From NCBI GenBank assembly GCA_004431415.1, contig QPMI01000489.1, positions 1 to 64,000 of the forward strand: 64,000 nt of DNA, in the 5' to 3' direction. The first letter of the stretch is position 1, and the number at the start of each line of letters is the position of its first letter. Source of the stretch: Cyanophora paradoxa CCMP329 (taxonomy: Eukaryota; Plantae; Glaucophyta). Shown here piece by piece: positions 1 through 55,560 of this stretch. A program made the translations under genes and the position numbers. The notes under the pieces are model-generated. The model did no database searches and was not told where the DNA came from. It saw only the letters and a list, made by a program, of their open reading frames with translations.

Positions 1-568
1 CTATCAAGAATTCGAAGGACCCTTCCGCTCGCACACCGTCTGGTCGACTTCCGAACACGCATCAAATTTGGGCTTACCTTACTCAGAATATACCCGGTGA
101 GCATATGCATGAAATCAATGGCTCATGTTTCCATCTCTGAACTGATACCCCGCGTGTCAGGCGTTGATTTCGGACCAGAGCCTGGCCAGGGAATTAAAAG
201 AACGCGTTCAGCCGGAAACGACTCAGCAATAGACTTCAGCCAGAAGCCATTACGGCGCGAACGACGATCCCAATTCCTCAGACGCATCTGTTGACTCCAG
301 TGCATCGCGCACGCGGCAGCGCGGTGGCAGGCTCAGGCTGCAGCGAGAGTCCTCCAATCTTTAGCTTCAGCTCCGTATGTCGGTTCGAGCGTCTTAAATG
401 TTTCTGGTTTTTTTAATTCTGAGTGATTCGAAGGCGACAAGCCAGTGAAGCGCAAGAAGCGAGAAAAACGAAGTCCCCGCTTGTCGTTTCTTGCTCCCGT
501 GGCATGATTGAATTCAGTCGATGTGACAACTTTCCACGGCGCTGGCAACTCGCGGCTGAGGTTGTCAA

Positions 569-1255
569 ATGGTCGCTATGCGGATGAAGCTGGAGCGGTG
601 TACGATATGCGTTTTCATATCGGAAGGAGAGTCTGCCAGCATTCTGAAGAAACAAGACAACATGAAAGCCTCATCCATTGGATCGCTCTCTCGATCTTTG
701 AATTATGGCGAGCTCGGCCTCGTTGACATCAAAACGATAGCAGAGTTCATTTCCGGGGGGTCTTGCCGGAAGGGAACTCGACTTGGAGCTGGACTCGCCA
801 GAGGTTGTGATTGCGGACATAGGAGCAGGTTCAGGTGGCGTTCTGAGGGCAGCTCAGCCTCATATTTGCTCTCATGGAGAGGCAGCTTCCATTTCGTCTG
901 AAGAAACTCGTCGGATTCGAAATCTTGCAGATGTTTCTCGCAAGCTTCAAAAAACTTCAGATATCCTTTCTTCAGCAGTGCCGATCCGTTATGTTCAGCG
1001 AATTCCCAGAAGTGATTGCGTTGCTCGAGGCGTATACACAACGCACCAGAGCTGGTTATCGGCGAAGCCGGCTTGCCGACTTCGGAAGTCTGGGGTGAGC
1101 TCCCTTTTCTTACATATGGATTCCACCTACTTCTCTGTTTAATGTGATGAATGCAGAATTACGCACGCTGTTATTAGTGATCAAGTGATGGAACACGATA
1201 TTCGCGAATCAATCTTCGTCCGTCTTGCGGTTCAGTGCGCCTCGGGCTTCCTGGT
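569..1255 (+). pseudogene. DOT1-like class I SAM-dependent methyltransferase domain, frameshifted
   Basis: Joining three frames gives SLNYGELGLVDIKTIAEFISG..SPEVVIADIGAGSGGVL-GQLSLIFALM..LKKLVGFEI.., then after an intron ITHAVISDQVM. This matches the DOT1 motif order YGE / DLGSGVG..Q / GxE / motif IV. It needs +1 shifts in the G6 run at 755-760 and near 846. Motif IV is divergent. Confidence 0.55.
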
Positions 1256-2798
1256 GGGTCCAAGTTGCTGTCTTTTTTACTCTAAGCAAAGCTGTTTTGA
1301 CATCCTGTTTTTCCAAAAGATACTTTCCATCATCCATGGTCGGAACGCGATGTGCATCACTGCAGACTTCTTGGTCGTTTCAATTACCTGGGAATTCTCA
1401 GCTGCGCCAACAAGGTGATCGACGGGAATTCAGATTCAGTTTCAAGGCAGGCAAGGCTTCGGCCACGAACTGTCCCTCAAGGATTGTACTCAACGTACAA
1501 CGTGGACGCATTTCACGTGTTTCGCCTCGAACCAGAACGACTTGAGCGTCCGCTTGCTGACGTGCCGGAGTTGCCGGAATTCACGGGAGGCTTCGCTTTT
1601 CTTCCAGAGCACACGCTGGGTGACCCTTTCAATGACATCCACATGCAGAATTGTGCGTAATGATCATCTCAAAGTCTTCCATTGCCTAATTTCGAGCATA
1701 ATTATAAACAGTTTTGGAGATTGTTGGTGCGAAACAGTTGATGCGTCAACTTGGAATCCGACCCCTAGAATTCCATGGAAATGTCGTTGAGAGCATTGTC
1801 TCCAAGATTGCATCTCTGGAACGGCACCGCAAACCAGCGCCCGGGGTCGCCTTCGTATTGGAAGAGGCATTCCACTGGTAATCTATTTCTTTTAACGTAT
1901 AACAATATCGTTTCGCTTATTTTTTTCATCGCAAAGGACTGCTCACGTGCTTTTGAGTTCTCGGATGGGCCGGGAATGGTTTTTTACGATTCTCTTGGGA
2001 CCTACTTTCAAAACTCGGCTGTCATCGCTGGTGAGATGCTTTCGAGCATGCGAGGATGTGACCGCTGGTTGCCGGAAACACGACTTGAGGACCGTGTCTG
2101 TCGAATCGATTTATTTCCCTGCTCCACGTCAACTGCTCAGGACGCGTTCACATTGTCGGTCGCATTTCAATTGCTCGCATTGCTGAAATTTACCGGTACT
2201 GAAGGCTTAACGGCAGTGCGGAGTCCATGCAGGCGACTTCTTACTCCAGTTGTCTGAATGTCTGAACGACATTCTCGACGCGTCTGGCGCCGTTAGGCCT
2301 CCGACGTTGCAGATGTGGTACCCAACAGGGCAGCTGCATGAGGAAGAATACGAGAAGCAGGCTTCGTACACGTATCCGATTTCTCTCGAAGAATTCAAGG
2401 AGAAACTTACTCTGCACCTTATGGCGCGTTTCATCAATCACGATATCACGGCTTCCCCTGAAGAGCACATCAAAGAACTTGAACTCAGGTTCGGGAGGTT
2501 CAGCTTCGTATTCTTCCTTTTCATGTGCTCGTTTGCAGGTACATCTCGGAAGTCCGAGCTCAGAACTCCAGAATTGAGTCCTCTCCGCACATCCTGGAAC
2601 ACGTTCAGAAACTTTATCATACTCGCCCTCCAAACCAGGCCCGAATTTCACATGATGGATCGGAGCTGGCAAAAAAGCGGATGAATGAGGTTATCAAGGC
2701 TTACAATTCTAACTTCCAGTTTCCACATATTCCAAAAGCCGGTTCGTGAGCGTTGTTCTAGCGCTGTTCGATTTTTGACCGCGCTGTTCCGCGCGGCA

Positions 2799-3565
2799 GT
2801 GAGAGAACAACTGAGCCATGATTGCTGCGTCTGCTTCGGGGCCACGGGGTCACGTCTGCTTCTTTGCCGCGATTCTCCTGCTTGCCACAACATTGTTTCC
2901 GAATACCAGTGCACTCCTTTCAACTGCTCTTATGGCACTACCGATTGCGGAAATCGGAACTTCAAGATCGTGGGTCAGTCTTCAAGTATTTCCGTGGAAG
3001 TTTTCGACGAGCAGAATGACTGTGGTGTTGGCATCCGGAACCCGAAGTGGGCCCCCAGAATACGAGCAGGCATGTTTTTGGGAGAGCTTCTGGGGAACAA
3101 ATGCAACAGGTCCAGAGCAAGTTCCCGGTCGAAAAGCTACGCGGCTCACAACGCATGTTCGACTGAAACATCTTCTCAACTGGTTATTCCGTTCTTTCTT
3201 CCAATTACAAGTACCCTTCCTACTTGCTTGAACAGGCCTGCGCGTGCAGGTTGCTGGATATGGCAGCCGGGGCTGGCCAGTGCTGCAGAATCACAGCTGC
3301 AAACCGAACGTCGAGCTTCGACCAGTGATGGTTGGTGACAGATATCGTTTTGGGTTTTATGCTTTGTTAGACATTGAGCCAGGTGATCCCCTCACGTGGA
3401 AGTATTCGGTACGTGCTTGACGTAGTCACATTCCCACATTCTTCGAATTCACGACCTCCGGGCCTCCAGTCGGAACCCCTCGACGACAGCAGCCAAGAGC
3501 AAATATGCAAATGCCCCGAGTGCCGCCGACCCAATTGCAAAAGGCCGAATCGCATCTATGTGTAG
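2799..3565 (+). pseudogene. AWS-SET-postSET histone lysine methyltransferase (Set2/NSD/ASH1-like), possibly disrupted
   Basis: AWS DCCVC..LCRDSPACHN..QC..C..G..DCGNRNF; SET GVGIR..GMFLGELLG; intron 3183-3235; LLDMAAGAGQCCR; NHSCKPN (from 3289) ..YRFGFYALLDIEPGDPLTWKY; post-SET CKCPECRRPNC. A frame break lies just before NHSC. Upstream exons (~1300-2750) may belong to the same gene. Confidence 0.75.
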
Positions 3566-3792
3566 GGGAGAATGTAGCTTTATTAGGAATTAGGAGAGTA
3601 GCTTTTTGAGGAATTAGGAAGTAATAGATTTGAATTGATGAGGAAGCAACTGCGCCTGCAGGCATTCACACGTGCACGCGCATGCACGCACGTCATGATC
3701 ATCATGTGCATAAGCCGTCCTCGCTGATCATGAGGGGACAGAGGCATAATTAAATATTAATCGTCCTAGTGGCTCCGGCCCATCATGCGGAT

Positions 3793-4478
3793 CTCGAGGC
3801 TCGAGCTCCATCATCAGCGCCGTGTGTCTTCTAGGCTGGGCCCGGAGGGTTGCTTGCTACGAGACACGAGCTTTTGATCATGACTGGCCATGCGTCGAGC
3901 TCGCCGAGTCGCCCTGGTACCGAGGCCTGAGGCTTCATGATCACGAGCTCGATGGGCTCATGATCAGAAGAATCATGATTGTGTGCTTTATCACCAGGAC
4001 CGGATCCGAAAGGCCCGGGCCTCCGAGGCTCTGCGGCTGCATTAAGTCATGATCAGGGATCCGGAGCCTCAAAGGGAGCTGCCGAGGCCTGAGCCCAGTG
4101 AGGCTCAGCGGCGTCATGATCCGATGCACATGATCACAAGCTCGAGCTCCGAGGCTCTCAGATCTAGAGTCTATGACCAGCGCATGTCCCCTGGGCCTCA
4201 AAGGAGGCCTGAGGCTTTCTCGAGGCTCGAGCTCCCATCATCAGCGCCGTGTGTCTTCTAGGCTGGGCCCGGAGGGTTGCTTGCTACGAGACACGAGCTT
4301 TTTGATCATGACTGGCCATGCGTCGAGCTCGCCGAGTCGCCCTGGTACCGAGGCCTGAGGCTTCATGATCACGAGCTCGATGCCATGATGGGCTCATGAT
4401 CAGAAGAATCATGATTGTGTGCTTTATCACCAGGACCGGATCCGAAAGGCCCGGGCCTCCGAGGCTCTGCGGCTGCAT
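3793..4478. repeat. ~250-bp direct repeat (3793-4042 and 4219-4478) in TCATGA/GAGCTC-rich spacer
   Basis: Two near-identical copies differing by small indels, between the convergent SET and transposase genes. Confidence 0.9.
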
Positions 4479-4557
4479 GCCGCAGGCCACAAGAAATAAT
4501 AAATTTGTTACAAGCTAATTATTTGCATAAATGACGTCTTGCGCATGCAGCTGTAGG

Positions 4558-7500
4558 CTACGTTTTACGCAGGGACGTGAACGGCAGCCGCTCGCCAAGA
4601 AAGTTCCTAACCTCTCCCTTATCTGGGAAGCACTGCTGAGCTCTGATAAGGTGATCGATTGTTGGGTTAGGGAGCACACGCTCGAATTGCGACGATGTGT
4701 GGTCGGGGAGAGGCATCAGGCGCCAAGGCTCGATGGTGTCAGGCCACACCCAACGACAGAGAGGGTCCTCTTTGGTGATGTCGATTCGGTCGCAGTTCAA
4801 GTTGGGCATAAACGAGCAAGCTGAGAAGGGTAGACCGCAGCTCGAATGATGCGAAACGCACCCCGGGTGCCTTTGCGTGGGCGAACTCGAAAAGGCCTCT
4901 GGCACGAGCATAGCGCCGGACCGGCTCTCGCCGGTCAGGATGCGCTTGGATCTCCTCGGCGCTGAGGTAACCCATTCGCCCGAGGGGAATGATAGGGTAG
5001 GGATGGCCCCCCTCGTCGCAGAGCTGCCGTCGGGGAACCATCGCGATAAAGGACATGAATGAGCTGTCGTGCTTGTCGGTTGAGAGTTCGCTGGAAATGA
5101 ACAGGTGGTGGTTGGCGTAAAAGCAAGGATACATAGTTCCCTTTCGAGGTGGGACGCCAATCCATTCTCGAGGCATGATGGAGAAGTGCGGATCCATCGG
5201 ACGCCAGGGCCCAGCCTCCGGCAATACAGGTTCTATCGTGTATTCCCAGCTCGGCCTGGGTGCGCATGCTGATCATGATCACGAAGAAACAAACAAGGGG
5301 CGGATCGATATCCGGATGGTTCGAACCAGGTGCCTTTAGTCTCTATGAATCGCTCTCGCTCGTCAACGTAGAGGTCGAAGAAAACGGCCAGATACGGGGG
5401 ATTTCCGAACAGCTCCTCCCGCTCGCAAAACGAAGAGATTAAGCCACCGTACTCTTCATCGTGATTGTCATCACTGTGCAGAATTAATGCGAGTTTGTCA
5501 TCAATGTGGGGCAGATCTAGACTCTAGATCTGCAGCTGGCGGCGGCAATTGCGAATTCGAATTTCGAACCTTCCTTCAAGAATGAACCCCAGCTCTGGTT
5601 TGGTTTTCTTACTGTATTCGACGCCAGCTGTGTGAATATCGTAGCTGTAGCCACGTTTGCCCTTCCGAATGGCACCGGCTTTTTCCGTGTCAAGAAGGTG
5701 TGGAATTTTGTTCAAGAACTCGCTTGTTGCATGCTGCAGGACGGCAAGGGCTCCCATTTCCTGCAAACAAAATCCGTTCAAACGTCTCCAATACCGAAAT
5801 TCAATATGCATTGCAATAGATATTTTCACAACTTGCCTGCGTTCGTCGGGCCGCACTCGTTATCAGAGATGATTGTGCCCCGATTCCTGCAGTAACTTTC
5901 ACATTGTGACCGCCCCGCTCCGTTCCACGGGAAGAAACTGCTGGCGCCGGCCCCAGCTCGATGCATCCGTCCACTCTTCGCACATTTAAGCCGATTGCAG
6001 GCAAGCTACAGCCAATGGTTCGCGCACGCATCAACAACGAGAGCTGCATACATTGTCCAGAACGGCACGGGTACGTAGTGACGTTCGGCACCCCTTGTAA
6101 GAACTGCTAGTTTGCGGAGTTCAAGCAAGAAGTCCGGATAAACAATCTGTTACAACGTCACGGACGTGTCGGAGCCTTTGCTTTCTCAACGTTACCTTCG
6201 ATCCAATGCCGTGCAGGACGTCCAGTTGATTGATTACGAGGATCCGATAGAGGCAATTCTGTTTATCCATATCCGCATCAAGACACATGCGAAGAATGTC
6301 GCCTGCCACGTCTGCAATAGCGAACTTTTGAAAGTTTCGTCCAGTCCGTAAAAACGACGGTTCGTCCATCTGCACACATGGTTACTCCTGCTAGTCCTAA
6401 TTATAAACATCAAAGTTCGCTCTTCTCGATTTGTAATTGCGAACTTCACTTAAATTGGGTCTGGCGAATTTAATTCTTACCGTTGTTCCTGAAAAGTGCG
6501 GATATCGTGCGCGCCTTGCAACACGCTCGATAGCATCGTACAGCCGTTCAGTGGCTTCCCAGGCAAACGGCGCGTTATCTTCGAGTTCCGCGACAAGGTC
6601 GACTGGCTGGCGTGGAGGAGGCTTGCCATTTCGGAGAGCTGCTTCGTAAAGTCGCCGATCCTTTTCCATCTTTTGCTCTGCGCAGCGTATTTCCGCTTCG
6701 CTTGGCGCCCTGTAAAGGACAAGAACATCCATGTTGATGCTTAACCTTCGCATTGACGAAAGTAATTAAGTTAGTGGTTGTACGTTGCAAATCAACCACG
6801 AATGGAAGTTGGAAGATGCAACGACACACTGAATCGAGGTAGGACTGAGCTTATCACCATTATTCGCGTTGCCGCGAAGATAGTTGAAGACATCCGCCAG
6901 ACGGTTTTTGACGAGGTGGAATTCGTCAGTATGCCGCGCCCCTGAACGGTCAACACCCATGTCGAAATTCAGCTCGCCATGCCGCAGGAACTCCCAGTCG
7001 CTCTCGCTGAAGTCGCATAGGGGGCCGAGCCGAAAGTGTGGCCATTCCGCTAAAGTCGGCAAGCCTTGAACGCCTGGTCAGAGACAATTCAATGGACGGC
7101 GCGTTCGAAGGATGTTCACTTATATCCATTCTAAAAGGTTTACCGAAGGTTTTCGTTTTCACAAATTGAACAAAAGCTGTTTGCGTAATCTCTTTCCGAA
7201 ACCATCTTTGGCGTTGGATCTCTACAGCATGTCCGTCGGCTCGCTGTACCGAAGGGTGTCAGAACAGCTGCAGTGGGAACGTTTCAGTCCGTCGGCTCGA
7301 TGCACCATGCAGTAGTCCGTTCGGGCAGATGGGGGTCTATCATGATCCTTGGTCAGTACGCACAACTCCCGCATCCAGTGTTTGAGCGGGAGATCGTGTG
7401 CTTGAAACATGTTTTTCCCGGCGGTTTTGCTCTGCGCTTTCCAGAAATCCACCTTCGAAGCGGATGGCCGTGCTCGCCACTGTGCGACGCTGCAGAAAGT

Positions 7501-9627
7501 TTAGGTTTCTGTCCCGGAATACAAAGCCGCGCAAGGATGCGTTACGCGAACTTATCATAAATGCCGTTGCGCATCCGGGAGGTCATCGATATTGAGAGCC
7601 ATTGTGAAATATGCTTTGTCAGTTTTGCCGGTGAGAGGATTGCAAAACCCCACTCTGCTCAACGGTATTGAATGATTGAAAGAAAGAGACAGATTATAAG
7701 GCATGCAAACCCTTGGCTTTCGGGAGCGGGGACTCCTGGGGGCGGCGGCTGGTTGGCAACAAGCCACGGTGTAAGGAATACGCGGAACATTCCATCGAAG
7801 TTTCTCGGCTTCCCATCCATGAGAAAAACAAGGCGTTGCATTGCTGTTCTGAGCGAAACGGGGTGAGACAAGTGGCGAAAAAGCGGAAAGCGAGATAATG
7901 ATCACGCACCGCCAATTAGGATGCGCAGACATAGGTATCACAAACACAGGGGTGAAAGAGCCGCCGTGGGACCTAGAAACACGACATTAGAGTCCAGTTT
8001 TCAGAATAAGCTGTAGGTGTGGAAATGACCAGCTGTGCGTCACTGCGGAATCTGTAGAGTATGCGCACACAACTCCAAGACCGTCCGAAATTCGCACACA
8101 GCCCTCCTCGTGAAGAGAAGAGAAAAGTCTTGATTGAACAAAGTCGCCAGTGAGATGTTGGGTTTCGGATTCTTGCGACCGCAAATAGTAATCTGGAACA
8201 CGATCGCCCCCAATCTGTATTGCTCGAACGCCGTAACTGGACGCCGTTGTGTAAATTTGATCAGCCGTGGCCGCACCGACAGAATCGAAATCAACGCACT
8301 GGAACCGGGGATAATACGAAGGACTGTTCAGTAGCTGCTGAAAACTCCGGGTCGGATCAAAAAAGAAGCCCACCACACCATCGGCATAGGTTGAATGGCC
8401 ACACTCGCAGACTGTATTTGGAGGAACAGTTCCGTCTTCGATCCAGACTGTCTTGCAAATCGCCACCTTGTGCTTTGTCTCTTTATACCACATGTCCTGA
8501 AAGTGATGGAAGGCTGAGCAGGGAAATGTTAACGTTTCGAACACGAAAATTGAAAGTGGTTGATTATTTACCGCTACGAATTCTTGGATTTCTCTAATCA
8601 TTCTCTTCCAAGACCCGAGCTGCCTCGTTGCAGTTTGTTGGCCCTCAATGATGAGAGACACAGCCGCGTTGATTGATGCAAACATCTCAACAGGTGCTTG
8701 TGTAAAGCGTTTCTTCAATGCGAGGCAAAAAGTGATGTAATCCATGCGCTAGAGAACAGTTAAAAAGCCAATACAGCCAATATCAAGCAATGTATTGAAT
8801 GCTCCAGCACGCACCGACACTTTACAGCCCTCAAAAAGAGGCTCAGAATAAAAATTCTGCCTGTTGGTAGTGCATTCATCATCTGAGCCGTCGAGCGCTG
8901 CGTCCTGATCCGACTCTAGGCCATAATCCACTTGATCCGCCCTAGCTGGGTCTGCACGTATGTCGTCCGCTTGGCCTTCCTCTGCGGCTGGGTCGTCGAA
9001 AGCCTCATGAGCATGATCATCGCCATCGATGCCATCGACGATATTGGATTCATGTCCAGGTTCATTGCCGTTTTCTTGAGGACCAATACGATCAGTATAT
9101 CTACCCAGCCTTCGCAGCATACGAGCGGCTTTATTGTTGACACGTTTGCGCTTCGAATTGGAATCTGTTTGTCGCTCGTTGCCTTGAAGTGCTGCCGGGG
9201 CTGCTAATCGTCGTCTTCTTAGTGCCGCTCGAACCGAAATTGTCGGGATCGGTACGTCAAGAACTTCGGCTACGAAAGGAACGAAATCGCTTACAGGAGC
9301 TCTCCGGGCAGCTTGCTCTACTAGACTGGATCCATATTTGTCTAGGTGCAAATGTATCCTTTGCACCCAAGACGAGACGCGCTTTCCATTGCAGCGCGAG
9401 CAAGGGCACTCGACTTGCCGATCGCTGCTACTGAATCCGGTGTGCGCTAGCAGTTGATGTGCATTGAAAACCTCAGGACGCACTAACTTGCCTTGACACT
9501 TCTGACATTCGCACCGCAGTCGCTCTGACCGCTGCATGGCGTGGTTCGCACCGCTGCTCCAGGTTCTTCCCCCCCCGGGGGGTACACGGCGCAGTTTGAA
9601 AACATCGGCGTGGAGCATCTCGACCAT
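4558..9627 (-). pseudogene. CACTA/EnSpm DDE transposase (TnpD/Transposase_21-like), multi-exon, with apparent frameshifts/stops
   Basis: Motifs in family order: CECQKC/CPCSRC..HL; EPLFEGC; CECGHSTY..FFFDPTRSFQQLL; LMDGKPRNFDGMFRVFLTP; MALNIDDLP (~7576-7600); LPLKHWMR; LPTLAEWPHF..RHTDEFHLVKN (6904-6933, cf. HxLDVMHxEKN); GIGSKV..DCLSGL; MH..EMGAL..SEFLNK; C-terminal YANHHLFISS..DSS..RYARARGLFEF. Confidence 0.8.
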
Positions 9628-10176
9628 CCGTAAGCATCTTGAGCTCTTCTGAGTGTGCTTAGTCTTGCTGTAGTGCGATCGGAGTTTTCCGAAGCCCGGT
9701 ACAGCGACGCGATGAGATGCGCACCTAGGCGATGAGATGCGCTCCTAGGCAGCAATGAGACAGCAACAGAATGTCACTTAGCGCTGTTCGCAGAGTTGAC
9801 TGCCCCAATGGCCAGCCCGCGGCCGCCAGTGAGCACTAGTGGCGTGCATGCGTTACCGGCGACCCCAGCGGAAGCTAGCGGTGCAAATGGTGCGCATGCT
9901 TGTACTATGGTGCGCTTTTCCGCGGTACCAAGCCTGCGCAGTAATCGTAGCACGAAAAGCAAATGTCTTCAAGTGGAGGACTGCGTTGTTCAATGAGCTC
10001 CACAAGGTCTATGTGTACGCGTACGCTGTGGATATGCCGCTGTTGCAATCGTTTCATTAGCTCCACAGAGATTGTGGACGTGCAGAACCTCCGGCCGTGC
10101 ACATGAACTATGATACGACAACGTGCGCCCACGTTAGGTTCCCTTCTATGCAATCGTCGCAATTAGACCAACGGGC

Positions 10177-13100
10177 GTGGTTCCAATCAGGTTTTTTAAC
10201 GTCGAACGAGCTTTTCTAGCTGCAGTCGAAGAAGCCAACGAAGTGTTACCGATATCGAGCAAAATTGTCATTCCGCCTGTTCTCGGAGACGCGATGAAGA
10301 GCGTAAGAGAGCTTCATGCTGCTGCTCAGGAGGTTCGCGACATCGATCTACGCTTGGCCTCAATCACGTGCGCATTCATTTTGCAAATACGAAGCTGTGT
10401 TGCGAAAGGTTGATTCCCTGTACAGCTCCTGTGACTTGCTGGCAGACGATGTTGATATTGATCCTTCAAATTTTGATGCTCTTCTGGCAGAAAATCAAGA
10501 AGCGGCGAGGAGATGCACTCTGGCCAGAAATACTTGCGTTGAATGTACGCAGTCTTACTCGTCCCCGCTAGTATAACAGCTTACACTACATGTGCAGCTA
10601 TTGGAAAGGTCCCGAACTGTGGAAACCGAAGCAAAGGCGGAGAACCCGTTCCAGTTCCAGCGGTGTGCATGCATCCCAGCGCTTTATGGACTTGACAGCC
10701 GATGCTAAGAGCTCTCCTCACATGTTCAGGCCGGAAACTCCTCTGGCGGCCGCTTCAAAACGGTGTTCTTCAGCAATTCGAGCGTTCGAATGCTGATGCC
10801 CGAGTGCTGAAACCTTTGCCGTTGCTGTTGCTTTCAGGCAGCAACCGTCTCTGGCGAAAATATTCCAGCGGCAGTTCCTTCGTTGAAGGTGATTTCCCGT
10901 TGTTTCACCATTCGAATATCGATGCTGCCCGGTCCTGAAAATCTGGTCGGTGCTTTGCCCTCAGACTGCTGATAAAGGAGGTCCTCTGAAGGTGCTGTCT
11001 TTCTTTGTGTCTGCAATTTCTTCTTCACCGGTTACGCCTCTGATTTTGTGGAAGCCGATGACGCTTTTGGCGAACGCTGCTTCCCTTGCTCGAAATGTGG
11101 TCCTGCTGTTGTGTATTGCTATCGCAAACTGATGGGAAGCGCAGATTCTGAAGAATCAGAGCGTGAATACAGTCGGCAGATCGACGACAGCAATCCTTCA
11201 GAAGAACGATGAGAACAAAAACGATGGATCCGACCGCGAGGGGTCGGAGAAGGAGAACTCATACGCGGGTCTCGCTGCGCACCGCCTTTCGGGCGGTCGC
11301 AGTAACGCCAATGCGTGGGGTGAACTCGATTGCTGTTTGCAATCGCACGTTGAAGAACTTACGCTCTCACAAACAGCATCGGTTCTCAGGCAGCCTGCGA
11401 ACGATCCAGAGGAGCTTTGGCCTCTTCAAGTACAGACTCTTGTCGACGATATCATGAGAGTCTTTGGTGCGTTTTTCGAATTACACACGCACATGATCAA
11501 AACATGACCAACATACGTGCGCATGACAAAAAACAATCAGACGTCTCGAACACGATCTTCGGCGGCCGTCCACAAGTCCCTGTAGACTTCAAGGCAACGC
11601 TGGAGGCTTCAGTGCGGCTTCTGATTGGGACCGTTGAATATCAGAGCCGCAGACACCAGTCATCCGCGATGGCTGTTCGCTTTCTTCATGTCCTTATGAC
11701 CGGATTCATTTTTTTTGATGAAATCCGTGTCGGCAGCGTGAAGCTCTTCTTGCACTCTTCGCGAAGCTCCGAGAAAACAGCTACGACACTGCGCTTCCTG
11801 TGGGCGTTGATTGCGTGGCCATCACGCATGGTTCGGATTTGCATTCACCATTCAGTTCAGATTTCCATTCAGTTTCCATTGCAAAACGCCCAACCACGCT
11901 CAGGTTTCTCTTTCCTCGGAAGGCGCGACGAAAAGAATCCACGAGTCTTCATTCACAATGCTCGGTCTCCTTTTATTCGTATCAATTTTATGGTATATCT
12001 TCAGGCCATTTGGGACGCACTTGGGCAACCCATTTGGCTTGAGATGAAAACATCGTACAGCAGTGCGAATCGCTTTTTCGGAATATGATATCTTTTTTAA
12101 ATTCCGATGGTCCGCTACAGAGCTGATTCAACGCATCCTTCTCGCCCTCAAGTACACCTGTTGCACAATGACAGCAAACGGCGTTTATCCTGAAGGAGTT
12201 CCAGACGGAAATCCAGCACCGGTTCATATCTTTGTTTTCCTCATCATCATCATTCACCGACATACCACGTCAGGAGCCGTTCACGGAAAAGGTTGTGACG
12301 GAATGGCTAAAGGGTCACGTTAGATATCTTGTTCAAAGTCGCACCACGGAATGGAGGACTACTGTGGCTGTGTGCCAGCCATTATCTTAAATGTGCTGTC
12401 CACGGTTTTCTCATTCTTGCGACAGAACGGCGCAACCTTGTATAATGGCCCGAAAAAGATGAAACGCATGCAGAAACGAGAAGTCGAGCGGGCAAAAGAG
12501 GTTGATAAGTTCTCTAAGCAAATCATCAGCCCCGGAGACTTCAGTACTTGTTGTTCATTTTTCGATATCTTGACGTACCTGATTTCGTTTCGCAGTGAAT
12601 CCGTTCCTTGCTGCACCGGAAGCGATTCCTAACAGTCTGATGCGCTTCAACAAGTTCGAGCTGGTGGACTTGATGCACGTTGGGGCTCCGAATGCGACAG
12701 CCGAGATAGTCGGGACAGGGTTGTACGTCGGCCGTGTGGATTTATCATTCGTCAATCCGCAGCTTGTACGGGCCAACCTGTTTGAATTGGAGGAGGTGCA
12801 TGCGTTGAATACTACCTTATGAGCGCCAGTAATCGTGTTCTCGTGACGAGGCCCTTTGCGATGCCGTACAGAGCGCCCACGATCTGGTTGTCGTGACATC
12901 TGTTTGTCCAACTTGGGTTCAGAAACAGATTCCATACTTCTACATGAAGAAAGGCGTCGCAAAAGAGATCGCGGTGCAGATGGTCAGTCAGAATTCTTGG
13001 ATTGTGTGCAGCACGTGGAACCGGACTGATTGACGCCGCGCAGGTTGTAAGTCACGTAGTCTTTCCAAGATGGTTTTCGTTGCTACTTTGATGACTGCGG

Positions 13101-13500
13101 TCCCGGTGCAGCCGAACATGCAAGTGGCGAACGGAGCGAAACGAGCGATTTTCTGGGCAGGAAATCTTCTTCAAAAGAGCACTGCTAACACGAGTGCATC
13201 CGAGCCAACATCTGGCCTGCTTCTGATGCATCACGTCCGTTATATCTTAATTGTATCGATCCCATTAATCGAATCGATCCACCGATGCAGGAGGAGCTCG
13301 AGTCCGAAGCAAATAGTGCCGTCGCCTCCAAAAAGCCGAGGATCAAGGCATCTGCAGCTGGTGCCGGAACAAGCATGCTGGTGCCGGGAACAAGCATGCT
13401 GGCGCGGCCAGCAAGGGGAAACAAGGAGGGGAGGAGGAAGGAGGGCTCGAAGAGATCAGTGAGCAATTTTTCTTCGGTCGTGTCAATCGACATATTTACA
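10177..13500 (+). CDS. Putative second element gene (possibly TnpA/ORF2-like), degenerate, boundaries uncertain
   Basis: Chain of protein-like exon fragments divergent from the transposase. VDLMHVG..IVGTG (12595-12822) and VPVQPNMQVANGAKRAIFWAGNLL (13070-13200) loosely resemble the TnpA C-terminal domain. Weak. Confidence 0.3.
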
Positions 13501-13740
13501 TAAATGCTGCTCATAATTTGCGTGTCATTAATGAACCAATGAATAGGGATCAGGACGATGATGGTGACGAAGCCTCTGTGAAAAACGTGTGCCCTCTGTC
13601 AATTTCTCTTCACACGCTGTCTTTGCTCTTCATCCCTTCTTTCCATCTATCTAGATGTTCATGCAAAAGCGTGCCTGCACATTGCTCTCGCGCTTGCGTT
13701 TTTGCAGATAACAACACCATCAGAGCCATTTTGACAGAGC

Positions 13741-15033
13741 CAGGTCCGGAACCCGGCAACCTGACCGGTGCAGCTAGGTGTTCGAGATGGACGGCGTACG
13801 CCCGGGCCTCTGCAGAGAGAGGAAGTCGACTGCAAAGAGAGGAAGTCGACACGTGCACGGGCAGGTCCGGAACCCGGCAACCTGACCGGTGCAGCTAGGT
13901 GTTCGAGATGGAGGGCGTACGCCCGGGCCTCTGCAAAGAGAGGAAGTCGACACGTGCACAGGCAGGTCCGGAACCCGGCAACCTGACCGGTGCAGCTAGG
14001 TGTTCGAGATGGACGGCGTACGCCCGGGCCTCTGCAAAGAGAAGAGGAAGTCGACACGTGCACGGGCAGGTCCGGAACCCGGCAACCTGACCGGTGCAGC
14101 TAGGTGTTCGAGATGGAGGGCGTACGCCCGGGCCTCTGCAAAGAGAGGAAGTCGACACGTGCACAGGCAGGTCCGGAACCCGGCAACCTGACCGGTGCAG
14201 CTAGGTGTTCGAGATGGACGGCGTACGCCCGGGCCTCTGCAAAGAGAAGAGGAAGTCGACACGTGCACGGGCAGGTCCGGAACCCGGCAACCTGACCGGT
14301 GCAGCTAGGTGTTCGAGATGGACGGCGTACGCCCGGGCCTCTGCAAAGAGAGGAAGTCGACACGTGCACAGGCAGGTCCGGAACCCGGCAACCTGACCGG
14401 TGCAGCTAGGTGTTCGAGATGGACGGCGTACGCCCGGGCCTCTGCAAAGAGAGGAAGTCGACACGTGCACGGGCAGGTCCGGAACCCGGCAACCTGACCG
14501 GTGCAGCTAGGTGTTCGAGATGGACGGCGTACGCCCGGGCCTCTGCAAAGAGAGGAAGTCGACACGTGCACAGGCAGGTCCGGAACCCGGCAACCTGACC
14601 GGTGCAGCTAGGTGTTCGAGATGGACGGCGTACGCCCGGGCCTCTGCAAAGAGAAGAGGAAGTCGACACGTGCACGGGCAGGTCCGGAACCCGGCAACCT
14701 GACCGGTGCAGCTAGGTGTTCGAGATGGACGGCGTACGCCCGGGCCTCTGCAAAGAGAGGAAGTCGACACGTGCACAGGCAGGTCCGGAACCCGGCAACC
14801 TGACCGGTGCAGCTAGGTGTTCGAGATGGACGGCGTACGCCCGGGCCTCTGCAAAGAGAGGAAGTCGACACGTGCACGGGCAGGTCCGGAACCCGGCAAC
14901 CTGACCGGTGCAGCTAGGTGTTCGAGATGGACGGCGTACGCCCGGGCCTCTGCAAAGAGAGGAAGTCGACACGTGCACGGGCAGGTCCGGAACCCGGCAA
15001 CCTGACCGGTGCAGCTAGGTGTTCGAGATGGAC
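13741..15033. repeat. Tandem array: 12 full units plus one partial of a 101-bp unit (104- and 121-bp variants)
   Basis: Unit starts CAGGTCCGGAACCC at 13741, 13862, 13963, 14067, 14168, 14272, 14373, 14474, 14575, 14679, 14780, 14881, 14982. Confidence 0.97.
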
Positions 15034-15307
15034 GCAGTCGCTCAAGTCACATTTGCGAATTCACTTGCGTCTCAATTGCCGCTTTGCGCTTTTGCTTTGC
15101 GAGCGTTTTGCACTTCTTATTTTGTCATGCGGTTTTCGAGGGTTCTCTTTCGGGATTTTCTCTTTCGGGGGGGGGGGGGGGGGGGGGGGGGCTGATCACG
15201 ATTCGCTGAATTCCAGTTCGACATTGGCGGTGTGGGTGAAACTTGCCGGCTGCATATGTCTGCTTATTGACTTGCATATGCCGCTTATTGACTTGCATAT
15301 GCCGCAG

Positions 15308-16659
15308 ATGGAGGCTCCGAAAGCCAAGCGAAGCAAGACGGAAGACCAGCGAATCCGTCGCGATGTGCTAGCTGCTCTCAAGCTCAAAGACGAGTTGGAA
15401 TTCGACTCTCAGAAAGTGCACAACGAGGCGAATGGGGAGCGGAATCAGCGGGTCCTCGTCAAACTCCCCGTTTCAGCCGCCCGCCGCCAGCCGGGATCTC
15501 CGGATCTGGATCTGGAAAAGTGCACGAGGCCGAGCCCCCCTTCTGGTCAGAAGACGCTATTCGTACTGAACTCCGGCTGGAGTACAAACTCGAGGAACGG
15601 ACCCCTGGCGGCGTTCTCGTTACGCACTGGGAGAAGACCGAGAAAGGCTTCCTTGTTCCCGCTTTCCTCGGATTCCGCACGAAGCCAGGCCATTTCATGT
15701 TTGGGGTCGTGCGCCATTCAATTGTTGTCTTTCTCGCAATCAAGCATTATGTTTATGATTTTCCAATGCAGGTACGCGCCATGCTTGCAAGAATACGATC
15801 TTCAAGAGTATCCATCCTACGGAAGTGTATACTCCTCTGAAAGACACAGTCGCGGATCAGGATATGATGTGATTGCGCATCAATAATGCAAAAATCCGCG
15901 ACATGTTTGACGTCTTTTGTTCAGGGCATACTGGCTTGGAGTTTCGCCGACGCCACCGACTTTGGTCGCTGATAAGCTCGGATTCGGCTCAAGCAACAAG
16001 CTGCACGATTTGCTGGCAAAGAGTCGCAGTGACGTGGTAAGAAGTATATGAAAATACTGGACGGCTAGCACTTTGACTCATGATTCCGTAGATTCATGTG
16101 CCTGGTGACTGGGTCATTGAGCAATGGGTGTACCGCGACGCCTTTGAAGCCGAAAAGGAAGAGCGGAAGGACAAGAGGCAGCTGGAGGAGGAAGAGATGA
16201 GAGCAAAGTCGAACGCAGCCAGCCAAGACAGTCAGAATTCGAATGATGAGGACATGAAGAAGCTTCAGGCTGAGCAGGCCGAGCAGCAATCTCGGCATCG
16301 ACAGAACGAGGCTGATGAGGCAGAGATCGCGCGCCGATTTGAAGCCGATTCTTCGCTCCATCGCGTTCAGAATCCCGAGTTCGAAAGAGCGACTGCCGAT
16401 TACGGTCGCTTCTTCAAGGACGCTAATGTCCGTCTCCTGGTTCGTTCATTCTTTAACTCTCCTCTCCTTGTGTCGCTGCTGCAACATCATGATGCAGGAG
16501 GAGACTGCAATGGACGTGACACTTCAGCAAGGATCTTCATCACGTTCAGAGCCACTGGACCTGCTGGTCACACTTGCCACAGGGAAATCAGCTGCAGCAG
16601 TGGCATCAAATATTCCTGATGGGATGAGTCCGGCTTGTCGTCGGACGAGGAGGAGATGA
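15308..16659 (+). CDS. Orphan multi-exon gene inside the element (basic N-terminus, acidic coiled-coil segment), probably degenerate
   Basis: MEAPKAKRSKTEDQRIRRD..; VHEAEPPFWSEDAIR..; WVIEQWVYRDAFEAEKEERKDKRQLEEEE..; T-rich introns between segments. No family recognised. Confidence 0.45.
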
Positions 16660-16937
16660 CTACGCACCGCAGCCAGGTTGGTGGAGATGAGCTTGATTAA
16701 TGACCTGCCAGGCTGGTGCGCATCCCGCCAGTCCGCATGCGCACGCAAATAAGAAGAATTCCGTCCCAGCTGCAGATTTCAGGAATACGAAGCATTCATC
16801 AAACCGATTAGCTAGCTCTAGGATAGAGCTCGCGCGCAGTATCGCTTGAAGATGGGCTGCTATAGATAGCTTTTACAGAAAAAATAAAAAAAAGCAAAAA
16901 AAACGTAAAAAAGTGAACCGCTGCACCGAAACCAACA

Positions 16938-17151
16938 TTACCTCGGCGAGTTTACCCCGACGTCTTTACCTCGCCAACTTTACCTCGGCGAGTTTACACC
17001 GACGTCTTTACCCCGCTTTTCACAACTTTACCACCCTGACTTTACCCCGGCGACTTTACCCTGGTGACTTTACAGTGGTGTAACGCAAACAGCACAACTT
17101 TACCACACCCTAAGTTTACCATATGGTAAACTTAATTTCTGGCTCCCAGTG
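16938..17151 (-). repeat. CACTA terminus: subterminal TTTAC(C) repeats, 24-bp palindrome and CACTG end
   Basis: About a dozen TTTAC(C) motifs at roughly 14-bp spacing; perfect palindrome TAAGTTTACCATATGGTAAACTTA at 17111-17134; terminal CAGTG at 17147-17151. Confidence 0.8.
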
Positions 17152-20100
17152 ATAGCTGCGAGCCGCTGAGCTGCTCGCGCGCCACCTTCCCCAACCTGGA
17201 GCGCCAGGCTCCAAGTTTGAGCTCGGACGCGGCGCACGTCGGCGCTGCAGCTGCAGCTGGCAAGGCGCTGGCAATTGCAAGAGCTGAGGCTCGAGGAGAC
17301 GTCGACAAGCTCAGTGCCGCAGTGCAACACTCGCCGAGTCGACGTCGGCCGTGACCAGATCGGGGGCCTTAAAGCTCGACGATCTCATCGCGAGTGTGAA
17401 GTCAAGGCTCGGTTTTCGCGACGCCGATCGCGATCATCGTCCCGGCCGCGGGCTGGCGACGGGTTTTCGCGAGGCCGAGGCTCGCCGCGCGCGAATTCGC
17501 TGGGCTCCCGGGTCCGGCGAAACGCAAGCTCCGCAGCTGACAGGCGAGCTATGACCTGCGCCCAGGCCGCCTCGGGGCTCGCGGGGGCCGTACGCCCACG
17601 ACCACTGGGCCAGGACGCCCGTCAGGCGAAGGCTGAGGGCCTTACGCGTCGGCCGTTTCGCCCATATTGCCGAGTCGGTCGTCTTGGATGCACGCGAAAA
17701 TTGAACGCGGATCCGCTAGCCTAGCAGCGCGGGGCGCCAGCTCAGGAGATCTAGAGGGGCGGCGGTTGCAACTGCATTGCCATCGGCAAGCCCTCGAGCT
17801 CGGGAAGCCTGGCACCGCGGGGCGCCAGCCCAAGAGAGGGCGGCGGTAGATGCAATTCAAATGATTGCGTTCGAGGCGAACGGTTTCATCTGCTGGCGCA
17901 GCCTTTCGCGCCCGGCGTCCGCTGAGTCACTAGCGCTGCTCGCGGCCGAGCGCCGATCGGATAACGGCGTGAAGTTCACGGATCCGGGTCCGAGTTCGGA
18001 ATTTTGGAGCCAGGTGCACGTGGCGCTCATGATCAGGCCTGGGACTGGGGGCGCCAGCTGCAGGCTGGGCCGCGAGGCCTCATGATCAGCTGGCCCGTAC
18101 GCTTGGCCAGTGGGGCCGCGGACTCGCTGGGTCCTGCGGGCCGGGGGCCGGCCCGGAGCGCCAGGCCTCATGATCATGATCATGATTGAGACCGCAACCG
18201 TGGCTAGCGAGTGCCGAGGTGCTAGCTATAGGCGTCGGCGGGCTGAATCATGATCAGGGCCGCGGTTTGAGTTCGAAACAGGCACTCGCGGGGCCGCGTG
18301 ATCGCGAGTTTCGGCGCCCGCTGGCCTCGGGTTGGGACCTAGTTTTGCGCTCGGTCGCGAAAATATGCCGCTGGGGCGGCGGGGCGCAGGCTTAAGAGGA
18401 CGGCGTTCGAGGAGGCTCAGGGCGCCGGCGCCGGCGGTTACGTCCGGCGGTCGGCTTGTGCAGCCTCGCGCGCCCCGAGCCCGGCGGCCACTCAACGGCC
18501 GGGTCATCAGCGCCGCCGCAGTGCTCGCAGCCAAGTGCTCGCCGATTCGGCAATGATGATGGCGCGGAGCCCCCGCAGGCTCTGAGCCTAGCTCCGAGGC
18601 TCTGTGAGTGACAGCGCTCATGATCAGCCCGACGGCTGGCCATATACAGGCCTCAGCTGAAATTCTCGAATTGGAGCCGGAGCGCCGGCCGCGGGCCTCG
18701 AGCATGCGCATGCACGGTGCTCTAGATCATCGGATCTAGACCTCCGAGGCTCATGACCAGCCGCTGAGCCCCAGGCCGCGCCACTGGGCCGGGACCGCGG
18801 GTTGCAGGAGCTCGAGCGGCAGCTTGGGGGTCCGAGGAGGCTTTAAATTTCCGCTTCGAACTAGCTGCCACGGGTGCCGCGGCGTGGGGTAGTCAGCTGC
18901 AGTTGCGATCTGGGTCCGTGCCCAGCTGCATGTGCAGCTGCCAGGCTGCAGCCGCTGAGCTGCAGCCGAGTTCGGTTTGCGAATGCAAAGCGATTTGCAG
19001 ACCGCGAAGCGCGTGGCCGCTGGATTGTGGGGCCCTGGCTAGGGAGCCGTAGGGGACAGGCTTGGCGCGCAAGGCGCCGCCAGCGGCTGGGCCTTAAGCT
19101 TGTAGGGCTCGAGCCCAACCGCAATTGCGGCTTGCAACGCCGATCGGCAGCTGGCCCAGTGGGCATGCAGCGGCAGGCGACGCCAGCACGGCGCCGTCGG
19201 AGTCGTTCGAATTTCGCTTGCTTCGCCGCGAGAAAACTCGGGGGTCGAAGGCAAGGGGCCTCCGCGGCCGAGCTCGAGGCTCGTGCGGGGTGAATTTCCC
19301 GGTTTCGCGGGCAGGATCATCGGACCCCGGAAGGGCCCTGCTGCGAAAACGGTATACGGGGCACGCCGGGGGCGAGCCGTGTGCCTCGCTATAGACCCTC
19401 AGGGCCTGCCGGCTGCTGCTGCCCGGGATAGGCCGGGCCATGCCGTGCGGGGGCACTGGCGTCAGCTCTGGCACCTCCCGCACGTGCACGCGCAACTTGG
19501 CAAGCCATTGAGTCTAAGTTCAAAGCCATGGGTGCGAGAGAGGCGTCTCGCTCGCGCGCAACGTCGCAACGTCGCGCAACCTCTAGATCGATATCTAGAT
19601 CATCGGATCCGACTCGGCGATGATCTGAGACTCGAGATCCGGGCCGGTCACATGCTCAGCTGCAACGCGGCTTGCAGCCTCAAGGCTTCAGGACCTATAG
19701 CTTGGCCCGGCGGCTGAGCCTGGGCCACAGCTTATATCATCCGATGATCAGCTTCCGGAGGTCCGAATCCAACTGGGCAAGGTCCGATCCCGGCCTGCGG
19801 CTCGAGCTTGCAGCCGATCCGTACGGAGCTGGCCATGGATTCGGATTCGCACACAATATTGCTGGCTTGGCGACTCTCTCAGCAAGCTTAAGCCGGCCGG
19901 ATCCGCCGCGGCCGGCGCTGACGCTCGTAGCCAGAAGCGTGAGCGGGCCCTGGGCTGGTGTTCGAGCTCACGAGGAAGCAGCCGCAGCCTGCCGGCAGGT
20001 GCGTCCCGGGGCCAGAACCAGAGCTTCTAAAAAGCCTTTGAAGCTCAGCGGCTCGTGCGAACAGCAAGCTCAGATGGGCTTCAGGCTAGGGTCCGCTTTC

Positions 20101-20855
20101 CGAGGGCCCAGGCCCTGAGGGCTCGGGGGACTGAGCAGCTGTGCCTACAGTAGCATGTGCAGTGTGATTAAGGCTAGCGCTGGAGCCGGATCGGAGCTCG
20201 AGCTTGGGTGCCGGCCTCGATCGATCACGAGCTCCGTCTCGAGCTCCAGGCTTTTGTTTTGCAGCCTGGCCATGCATATGGCAGTACTGGTTGCAATTGC
20301 GTTCCTGAGCAGCTAGCCGTGCAGCGTGGAGCCTGCCGCAAGCAGCTCATGCAAGCAGCTCATGATCAGCGGCTGGCATGCATATATATGCTCCGGATCT
20401 GGCCATGGGTCAGAGCTAGACTCATGATCAGTGATCAGGGCCGTACGTGTACTGAGTCACCAGCCTGGCAGGCGCCGGATAGCTCAGAAATTGCAATTGC
20501 AATTGAGCGAGGCCTGCAGCTGCATGCGCAGCTGATCATCTCGCACGGCGCGGTCACCGGGTCACGAGCGCTGAAAAAGCCTCGATCGCGAGCTCGAGCT
20601 CGTGATCTCATTCCGGATCCGGATCCGCATGCACGCTGTGCGTGGGGTCGAGAGTCTGCACGTACTGTATGGCTAGCTATAGCTCAAGGCCAGTGTTCTG
20701 GCCAAGAGTCTGCACTAGCTATAGAGTACAGAGGACATTCTTCACACAAAATTCCGGGGGACATTCTTCACACGAAAAGCTCGCAGCGTAAAGCCAAGCT
20801 TATCGCGCAGAATGTCCGCGCTCGGATTCCGGCGTCCTCGCTGTCCACGGTTGAG

Positions 20856-21104
20856 CACACCCTTTCAAGAAGACAGGCTCACTACGCAGTAGTAGAGCGC
20901 TGCTTCGGGTGGCTAGCGATGCAGCGGTGACTCGAGCAGTCTGCCTCGGTCCCGGTTCGCTTGCTCTCCTCTCCATCGTCGGCTGATCAAGCACGCCCTT
21001 TCGAGAAGACAGGCTCACGACAAGGTCGTAGAGCACTGCTTCGGGCGGCTAGCGATGCAACGGTGACTCGAGCAGTCTGCCTCGGTCCCGGTTCGCTTTC
21101 TCTC
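20856..21104. repeat. Diverged two-copy tandem repeat, period 136 bp
   Basis: AGACAGGCTCAC..GGCTAGCGATGCA.CGGTGACTCGAGCAGTCTGCCTCGGTCCCGGTTCGCTT at 20871 and 21007. Confidence 0.85.
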
Positions 21105-21377
21105 TGGCCGTCGCTCGGGGCCAAGGGCCGCCGAGGTGAGCAAGCTCACATCGCACGAAACCGGAGCGATCTGCCCCCGGCTCGTGTTTGCGCTCTATTT
21201 GCGAGAGCAGCACGCCCCAGTCGTAACCGCGCTGAGCCAGAACCTCAGCCCGCGGCCGTGGGCGCCAGGCTAAGCCACGCGGCTGCCCCACGTCTCCTCC
21301 GCTGAAAGATCTGTGTGCGAGCGGCTCGCCGGGCTCTATAGGTGGCCGGCGACCGCCCGCGCTTAGTGCCGCGCGGC

Positions 21378-21666
21378 GCGAGCGAGGTCCGCGGCCGACC
21401 CAGCAGATCAAATCTGCCGACCCCAGCAGATCAAATCTCACGGGCGAGGCGCGGCGCGCACCCCGGGAGGCCGTGCGCGTGCGCAGCGACAGCACAGGCC
21501 ATGATGAACCCGGGCGCGGAGCGAGCGAGGTCCGCGGCCGACCCCAGCAGATCAAATCTGCCGACCCCAGCAGATCAAATCTCACGGGCGAGGCGCGGCG
21601 CGCACCCCGGGAGGCCGTGCGCGTGCGCAGCGACAACACAGGCCATGATGAACTCGGGCGCGGAGC
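21378..21666. repeat. Two-copy tandem repeat (~143 bp) with nested GCCGACCCCAGCAGATCAAATCT duplication
   Basis: Direct comparison of 21378-21520 with 21521-21666. Confidence 0.9.
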
Positions 21667-22502
21667 GCTGGGCTCGGGGTGCAAGGCTCGCGAGGGCCAG
21701 CACGGCCGATCGACCAGGCTCGATGTACGCCTCGGTCTTGGGCGAGGCTCGCGGGTCGCCGGTCATCGCACAGGTCTTCTTTCGTCTGCGCGAGGCCGTG
21801 CGCGCGGCGCGGCGCCGCAGGGGGCGCGTACTAGCATGGGCATCGAGGTTGTCCCTCCGAGATCCGGACAAGATCTGCGACGTCCGTCGGCGAGGGCGAC
21901 GGGAGGGCGCGTCCGACCGCATTTAGCAGTTCTCCAGAGCTAGTTCTACGTTTTCGGTGAGCTGACGGAGAGCCTGCCGGCTCGCTGTGGCTGATCGCTG
22001 TGTGCATCCCGATCGCATGCCGATCCGGGCTCGCCGGTGCGCGGGGGTCGCCGATCGACGCTGAAATGATGTTCTAGCGCTACTGGCGATGCGCCCGCCT
22101 CGCTGCTGGTCGCCGATCGTGCCGGGTTGATGTTGACGATGAGCTGCCCACGGGTTGCTCCGTAGGCAGTGGCGCCTGTCGGATAGGAGGTATTCCCACC
22201 CGATTGGGCGCCCGCGCGGTCCAGCGCGGGGCCGGCTCCCTGTGCTGGAGCAGCTGTAGATGCAGGCTGGTGTATTCTCTGTGTACCCGGAAGACTACTG
22301 ACACTGTACCCCTAGGACAGGTAGAGGCAGGCCAGCGTAGGCTACCGCGAGGCAAGCCTACAGGAAGAGACTATGCTAAGGCACTCTAGACTGCGTCAGG
22401 CACCAACTAGCTCTAGTCGCTAAGTCACCGCAAGGCCAGGGAATCGAGCCATGCGACACTAGAGTTAACGTTGCTCCTAGAGATCTCGATTTCCAAGCAA
22501 TC

Positions 22503-55397: not shown

Positions 55398-55560
55398 GCG
55401 CCAGATCTAGCGCAGCGCAGGATATATCTAAAGATCAAATTGCATGATCTCGGACGCGGGTTCGGCTCCGCAATTAGGGGTTTCGTGGCTGGCCCCGAAT
55501 GCGCCTCGCCGGAAGGCCTGCATCGCACCGCAGTCGTGTAGCTAGCTAGAAGAAGCCATC

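Follow-up and report, generated by a model that had tools for sequence, protein, structure and literature searches.

What kind of DNA is the low-GC block at the left end of contig QPMI01000489.1 from the glaucophyte Cyanophora paradoxa CCMP329, and does the histone methyltransferase-like gene found in it belong to a transposon? The stretch examined (the window) is the first 64,000 nt of the forward strand of this contig, and the GC, motif, and repeat counts given here refer to the whole window unless stated otherwise. An initial annotation had proposed a giant CACTA transposon that may carry its own activating histone methyltransferases. It now appears rather probable that a single giant EnSpm/CACTA element, with a TNP2-like transposase and a resident accessory SET gene, occupies positions 1-17151 with its right-hand part. 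A bolder reading goes further. A glaucophyte CACTA family with several diverged copies would encode one protein made of a DOT1-type (histone H3 lysine 79, H3K79) methyltransferase, an ASH1/NSD-type (H3K36) methyltransferase, and a degenerate SUMO-protease-like module, and this protein would write euchromatin marks on the element against silencing linked to CpG methylation. This bolder reading is unlikely.

The low-GC block, its right end, and the transposase

The features on which the assignment to EnSpm/CACTA depends are the following.

1-17151, no strand: low-GC block, probably the right-hand part (at least 17 kb) of an EnSpm/CACTA-type element, delimited by GC and 4-mer signatures; the left end lies outside the window
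17139-17151, minus strand: terminus CACTGGGAGCCAG, followed by ATA at 17152-17154
16932-17131, no strand: CTTTACC-type subterminal repeats and the palindrome AAGTTTACCATATGGTAAACTT, from repeat and motif searches
4561-9744, minus strand: transposase gene region, TNP2/EnSpm-like, its frames broken by introns and assembly indels

The composition profile gives a GC fraction of 0.49-0.59 within the block vs. 0.57-0.75 to the right of it. Overall, the block has about 50% GC and the genome 65% GC. Its parts also share a 4-mer signature, with correlations of r 0.65-0.82 among themselves vs. r 0.01-0.43 with host segments. Methylation decay was considered as the source of the low GC and was rejected because CpG is not depleted inside the element (observed/expected about 1.06).

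The lower-GC block and the CACTG terminus at its right end, both named in the initial annotation, were each found to be present. The sequence TTTACC occurs 15 times in the window and nine of these occurrences lie within 16951-17115, mostly spaced 14 nt. These motifs provide the arrays of short subterminal repeats that characterize EnSpm/CACTA elements. The palindrome AAGTTTACCATATGGTAAACTT (17110-17131) is a perfect one of 22 nt. It lies 8 nt inside the terminus and consists of two inverted subterminal motifs. The trinucleotide ATA that follows the terminus could be one half of a 3-bp target duplication.

Outside the right end, motif searches of the window found neither an inverted copy of CACTGGGAGCCAG nor a GGTAAA cluster, and the left end is thus placed beyond position 1. 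A left terminus between 3565 and 4558, which would have separated the transposase from the methyltransferase-like gene, had been named at the outset as one of the findings that would overturn the idea. The same terminus and GGTAAA searches found none there, and this candidate was rejected. Self-comparison did not detect a second copy of the element in the window.

The transposase gene is convergent with the SET gene in the same block, as had been proposed, the former on the minus strand and the latter on the plus strand. The N-terminus of the predicted transposase has two TNP2-type fingers (CxCxxC...HL..GF). One of these, at 9331-9432 in the open frame 8752-9744 (minus strand), matches Pfam Transpos_assoc with 23.5 bits and an E-value of 6.4e-5, which is under the cut-off of 27.7 bits. 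The other finger is at 9433-9513. The motifs C.CG..Y, FFxP..L, SDG, HSW, YNL, and IDDL follow in the TNP2 order, as judged by eye. The homologous-protein search returned no relatives of the transposase pieces 7990-8748 and 8752-9744. A low-recognition ESM Atlas match of one transposase piece to "Dynein_C" was rejected. A single-sequence AlphaFold2 model of 7990-8748 had a mean predicted local distance difference test (pLDDT) score of 35.7, too poor for fold comparison. The reading as a giant CACTA element draws its support from a single terminus, from the subterminal repeats and the composition, and from the weak match of the transposase N-terminus. This much of the original claim is supported, with the left end unseen and the DDE core unmatched.

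The putative accessory SET gene and its domains

The gene convergent with the transposase is a chain of open frames on the plus strand. Its parts are listed below.

569 (or earlier)-3565, plus strand: putative accessory gene with short introns, made of a methyltransferase-like N-terminal part, a middle part, and an AWS-SET-postSET-like C-terminal part; GT-AG introns of 37-62 nt would connect the open frames, and the stop codon is at 3563-3565
701-1252, plus strand: class-I S-adenosylmethionine (SAM)-methyltransferase-like region, DOT1-like by motif only, with NYGELG (701-718), DIGAGSGG (816-839), VGFEI (910-924), VIGEAG (1055-1072), and VISDQ (1170-1184)
1861-2149, plus strand: Ulp1-like motifs recognized by eye (HW, YDSL, and Q..DAF), with Ala at the place of the expected catalytic Cys
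2823-2963, plus strand: AWS-like cysteine pattern, read from the translation
3021-3408, plus strand: SET domain, with an N-terminal half recognized by motif (GxG, GELLG) and a C-terminal half with NHSCKPN (3289-3309) and the catalytic Tyr in PLTWKYS (3385-3408)
3506-3538, plus strand: post-SET-like CxCxxC...C, read from the translation

The open frames of this gene are interrupted in the assembly. These interruptions were explored by comparing the window with Illumina-based contigs from two DNA runs (2012 and 2024). A single Illumina contig of about 11 kb spans 1-3809 and extends about 7.2 kb further to the left. Over 1-3809, 27 one-base indels separate it from the window. Beyond 3809, there are an 8-base indel at 4379 and two indels in 4449-6000. 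The error rate of the assembly in this region is about one single-base indel per 140 bp, and the indels that are listed are mostly extra bases. Positions are listed for 12 of them, 11 of which lie in 1-3809. Three are in coding sequence (847, 1046, and 3132) and coincide exactly with apparent switches of reading frame.

In the window, the DOT1-like part is split over three frames. The split is an assembly artefact. Deleting the bases at 847 and 1046, which the reads show to be surplus, leaves one open frame of 134 codons (741-1144). One more frame switch, at about 755-760 within six consecutive G, needs a correction of the same sign; the indel itself was not seen there. Deletion of 3132 joins the two halves of the SET domain in one frame, and a 39-nt GT-AG intron (3211-3249) then takes out the last stop between them. 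Stop-free GT-AG joins of 37-62 nt are available at every exon junction of the gene. Where they can be checked, the apparent frameshifts in the SET gene are assembly errors. In this genome, many readings of a gene as "split" or as a "pseudogene" are artefacts, and apparent frameshifts should not be taken as pseudogenes. The accessory SET gene is likely to be intact.

Word depth in the two DNA runs is the same for the gene (921 and 142) as for the transposase end (893 and 142), which speaks for the gene being part of the element. Each run yielded just one contig that matched at 90% identity or more, and other copies in the genome must therefore be diverged.

The SET domain is the best-identified part of the gene. 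The piece 3232-3417 matches Pfam SET (PF00856) with 36.7 bits and an E-value of 6e-9 (cut-off 22.4), and the match covers the C-terminal half at about 3274-3405 (plus strand). Along with this family match, the piece has the NHSC motif and the catalytic Tyr; only the C-terminal half scores. When the C-terminal half was compared with the PDB by phmmer, the best match was ASH1L (8.7e-7), followed by NSD3, NSD1, and NSD2 (4e-5 to 2e-4), SET1 (3e-4), and SETD2 (4e-3). The matches to Clr4/SUV39 (0.04) and EZH2 (0.1) were far behind. It is thus nearer to the ASH1/NSD/SET2 group than to SUV39, EZH, or SET1, a weak ranking since only 41-46 residues align. This short alignment supports a predicted SET C-terminus of the ASH1/NSD/SET2 type, the type that writes H3K36 methylation. 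Of the AWS-SET-postSET domain in the initial annotation, the C-terminal half of SET is therefore upheld; the AWS, the N-terminal half of SET, and the post-SET consist of motifs that no tool supported.

The N-terminal part is possibly a class-I methyltransferase of DOT1-like kind, to judge from its motifs. Read by eye, YGE, DxGxGxG, GxE, motif II (acidic), and motif IV follow one another in an order and at distances like those of DOT1L. The alternative is that this domain is not DOT1-like and is instead another class-I methyltransferase, such as a DNA N6-adenine methylase, or an inactive fold, so that there would be no "double histone writer". This alternative comes close to an even chance. The DOT1-like region, in pieces of 32-113 amino acids, had no match in Pfam, to DOT1 or to any other family, and none in the PDB. 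By PDB phmmer, the DOT1-like, AWS/SET N-terminal, Ulp1-like, and uncharacterized-gene pieces gave nothing beyond chance-level hits (E about 1), among them a resemblance of the piece with YGE to cNMP-binding domains. ESM Atlas returned no usable match to the DOT1-like piece. At the place of the catalytic VNN(F) of DOT1 (N241 in DOT1L), an alignment by eye reads VISDQ. No tool supported the DOT1-like domain claimed for 569-1255, which stays a reading at motif level. In the red-algal accessory gene PAG2, a PF01555 DNA methylase is paired with SET (10.1101/2025.02.11.637652). A PF01555 domain would itself fit this gene poorly. Motif I precedes motif IV here, which conflicts with the beta-class order of PF01555, and Pfam found no PF01555 match in the gene pieces either.

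The remaining domain results point in the same direction as those for the DOT1-like region. Exon-sized pieces of AWS, the N-terminal half of SET, and post-SET had no Pfam or PDB match. The Ulp1-like part had none either, and the His-Asp-Cys triad of Ulp1/C48 peptidases is incomplete; HW and YDSL are present and the segment AQDAF has Ala for Cys. No relative of the AWS-SET piece was returned by the homologous-protein search, a scan of 1.8 billion proteins gave no support for the gene pieces, and two metagenome scans gave no relative; the public protein and metagenome collections that were searched thus yielded none at all. A repeat protein that matched 2685-3335 in a search of protein representatives was spurious and aligned only to an out-of-frame tail. 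A single-sequence AlphaFold2 model of 2799-3131 reached a pLDDT of 45.5, also too poor for fold comparison.

Does the SET gene belong to the element?

Composition can indicate how long a gene has resided in its surroundings. The GC content at third codon positions (GC3) is 0.48-0.69 in the SET gene and 0.45-0.60 in the transposase pieces. In host exons confirmed by Pfam (Peptidase_S9 and O-methyltransferase), it is 0.70-0.76. The 4-mer signature of 1-3600, corrected for composition, correlates with those of three other element parts at r 0.70-0.79 and with those of nine host segments at r 0.01-0.38. The other element parts correlate with each other as well as they do with 1-3600. In composition the SET gene thus matches the transposase part and not the host, which argues for long co-residence.

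This bears on the possibility that the element captured the gene as a fragment of host DNA (transduplication, or Pack-type capture). The gene would then be a chimera of SET and methyltransferase exons from the host, decaying and without a function of its own. Plant CACTA elements often capture gene fragments. The catalytic motifs deviate in the DOT1-like and in the Ulp1-like part, most of the gene has no Pfam match, and no expression was seen, all of which would be in keeping with such decay. A recent capture would look host-like, and the GC3 and oligonucleotide signature are those of the element and not those of host exons. In addition, the frame breaks that can be checked are assembly errors, the exon joins are stop-free throughout, and the NHSC and the catalytic Tyr of SET are intact. 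Capture of a host fragment is accordingly given quite a small chance.

A second possibility arises from the DNA between the two genes.

3601-4540, no strand: GC-richer spacer with direct repeats, a unit of about 430 bp present 1.9 times, many TCATGATCA palindromes, and twofold word depth at 4218-4478

There may be two mobile-element fragments here, in which case the SET gene would lie in another low-GC element or remnant that adjoins a left-truncated CACTA element, with the spacer between them. The signature of the spacer (3-mer and 4-mer) is unlike either side (r about 0.2-0.3 to the element), and it is closest to the host flank 17152-23151 (0.53). The TCATGATCA palindromes of the spacer also occur in host intergenic DNA. 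Accessory genes of the red-algal PAG group are also known to shift between transposon superfamilies (10.1101/2025.02.11.637652). Because the 0.9-kb spacer is host-like, two adjacent elements remain a rival to one. This objection is softened since GC-rich tandem arrays occur well inside the element (13735-15071). No terminus-like sequence was found at the borders of the spacer, and in 4-mer signature 1-3600 is as close to the transposase part as parts of the element are to one another. Two fragments are therefore held to be improbable, though less so than a captured host fragment.

The palindrome TCATGATCA has the form X, reverse complement of X, X and occurs 22 times in the window (3693-4394, 5270-5273, 18027-18618, and others). 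It is clustered in the internal spacer and in the host flank. CACTA elements produce 3-bp target duplications, and this CACTA family is for that reason a candidate source of the TCATGATCA palindromes.

Against the single element with a resident gene, then, stand the host-like spacer and the domain results described above, together with the following. The left terminus and the target duplication were not seen. Transposase_21, or another DDE core, had no Pfam match among 15 minus-strand pieces. Thirteen further indels in 1-3809 have no listed positions, which leaves the intactness of the SET gene unproven, and the preferred join of exons D and E requires one further correction. Spliced RNA of the SET gene was not seen in two runs; one putative RNA run gave four unspliced contigs of 151 nt at depth 2 and the other gave none. 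The claim that the element carries its own histone methyltransferases is half supported. The ASH1/NSD-like SET gene is genuine and has the composition of the element. It was not seen to lie between two termini, and that its N-terminal part is a DOT1 is unproven.

The single element with a resident SET gene suggests a possible mechanism. The accessory gene would lie between the two termini of the element. Its product could methylate histones, with a modification of the H3K36 type, on or around the element. Such methylation may counter or redirect silencing by the host, as has been proposed for PAG2 of red-algal Plavaka elements.

The rest of the element contains other open frames and an array.

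10138-12629, plus strand: open frames head-to-head with the transposase, with no family in Pfam or PDB
13735-15071, no strand: tandem array of 13 units of 101/104 bp, with the palindrome GGCGTACGCC in 12 of the 13 units
15292-16660, plus strand: open frames adjoining the right end, with no family in Pfam or PDB

The two groups of open frames may be accessory or TnpA-like genes. The array is GC-rich and has a higher-order pattern of 205 bp; GGCGTACGCC has 12 hits, vs. 0.12 expected by chance. By analogy, the array may be bound by protein, like the arrays that adjoin PAG3 in red-algal Plavaka. Runs of about 25 G are found in the element (15167-15191) and also in host DNA (24365-24404 and 26031-26077). 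Farther to the right, host exons of an oligopeptidase-type Peptidase_S9 are followed by an O-methyltransferase-like open frame (55542-60106 and 62871-63998, plus strand); they served as the composition reference for the host.

Comparison with known systems

Transposon-borne SET genes are already known, and the doubt that the initial annotation expressed about the novelty of its proposal was justified. The published cases include a methylase-SET fusion in an element of the same superfamily. Giant Plavaka elements of 17-19 kb (EnSpm/CACTA superfamily), described in red algae in a preprint on Bostrychia moritziana, carry the accessory gene PAG2 mentioned above, and tandem arrays of inverted repeats adjoin another of their accessory genes, PAG3 (10.1101/2025.02.11.637652). 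The element of C. paradoxa resembles them in being a giant member of the EnSpm superfamily with a fusion of a SAM-methyltransferase(-like) part and SET, palindrome-bearing tandem arrays, further accessory genes, and mostly silent copies. The differences from PAG2 are the glaucophyte host, the CACTG terminus (TGT or CATCA in fungal Plavaka), and a partner of SET that is unlike PF01555. This partner has no PF01555 match, and its motif I before motif IV is DOT1-like by eye.

SET histone methyltransferase genes have also been reported in HarbingerS and in Phytophthora MuDR elements (Kojima and Jurka, 2014, as cited in PMC12730594), and they are known in Helitrons. HarbingerS and MuDR, so far as the citing account describes them, are likewise cut-and-paste DNA transposons with a SET gene beside the transposase. 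They belong to other superfamilies and other host lineages, and the SET domain here is part of a larger multi-domain protein. The host-type enzymes ASH1L, NSD1-3, and SETD2 include the best PDB matches of the C-terminal half of SET and have NHSC and the catalytic Tyr in common with it, as well as AWS-like and post-SET-like cysteines seen by eye. Unlike them, the gene of C. paradoxa lacks the reader domains of the host enzymes, and its N-terminal half of SET, AWS, and post-SET remain outside the aligned residues.

Other transposons encode factors that act on DNA methylation. Among fungal transposons, EnSpm, Plavaka, KDZ, and others have TET/JBP dioxygenase genes (PMC12730594). VANC is an anti-silencing protein of Arabidopsis VANDAL (cited in PMC12730594). 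As described there, these factors are presumed or shown to act on the epigenetic marks of the element itself, which would be the likeness to the SET gene of C. paradoxa. They act on DNA methylation, whereas the mark here would be histone lysine methylation, and within that account the function is shown for VANC only. DNA transposons of C. paradoxa are reported to be heavily CpG-methylated and its methylated genes to be silent (PMC12344493). C. paradoxa is culturable and its methylome data are published, so that the idea is directly testable.

If the SET gene is truly borne by the element, histone methyltransferase cargo would reach a third archaeplastid lineage, the glaucophytes, and an EnSpm element of the CACTG type. 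SET would then be paired with a methyltransferase other than that in red-algal PAG2. This would suggest that modules of a methyltransferase plus SET are a recurrent solution of giant DNA transposons against chromatin silencing by the host.

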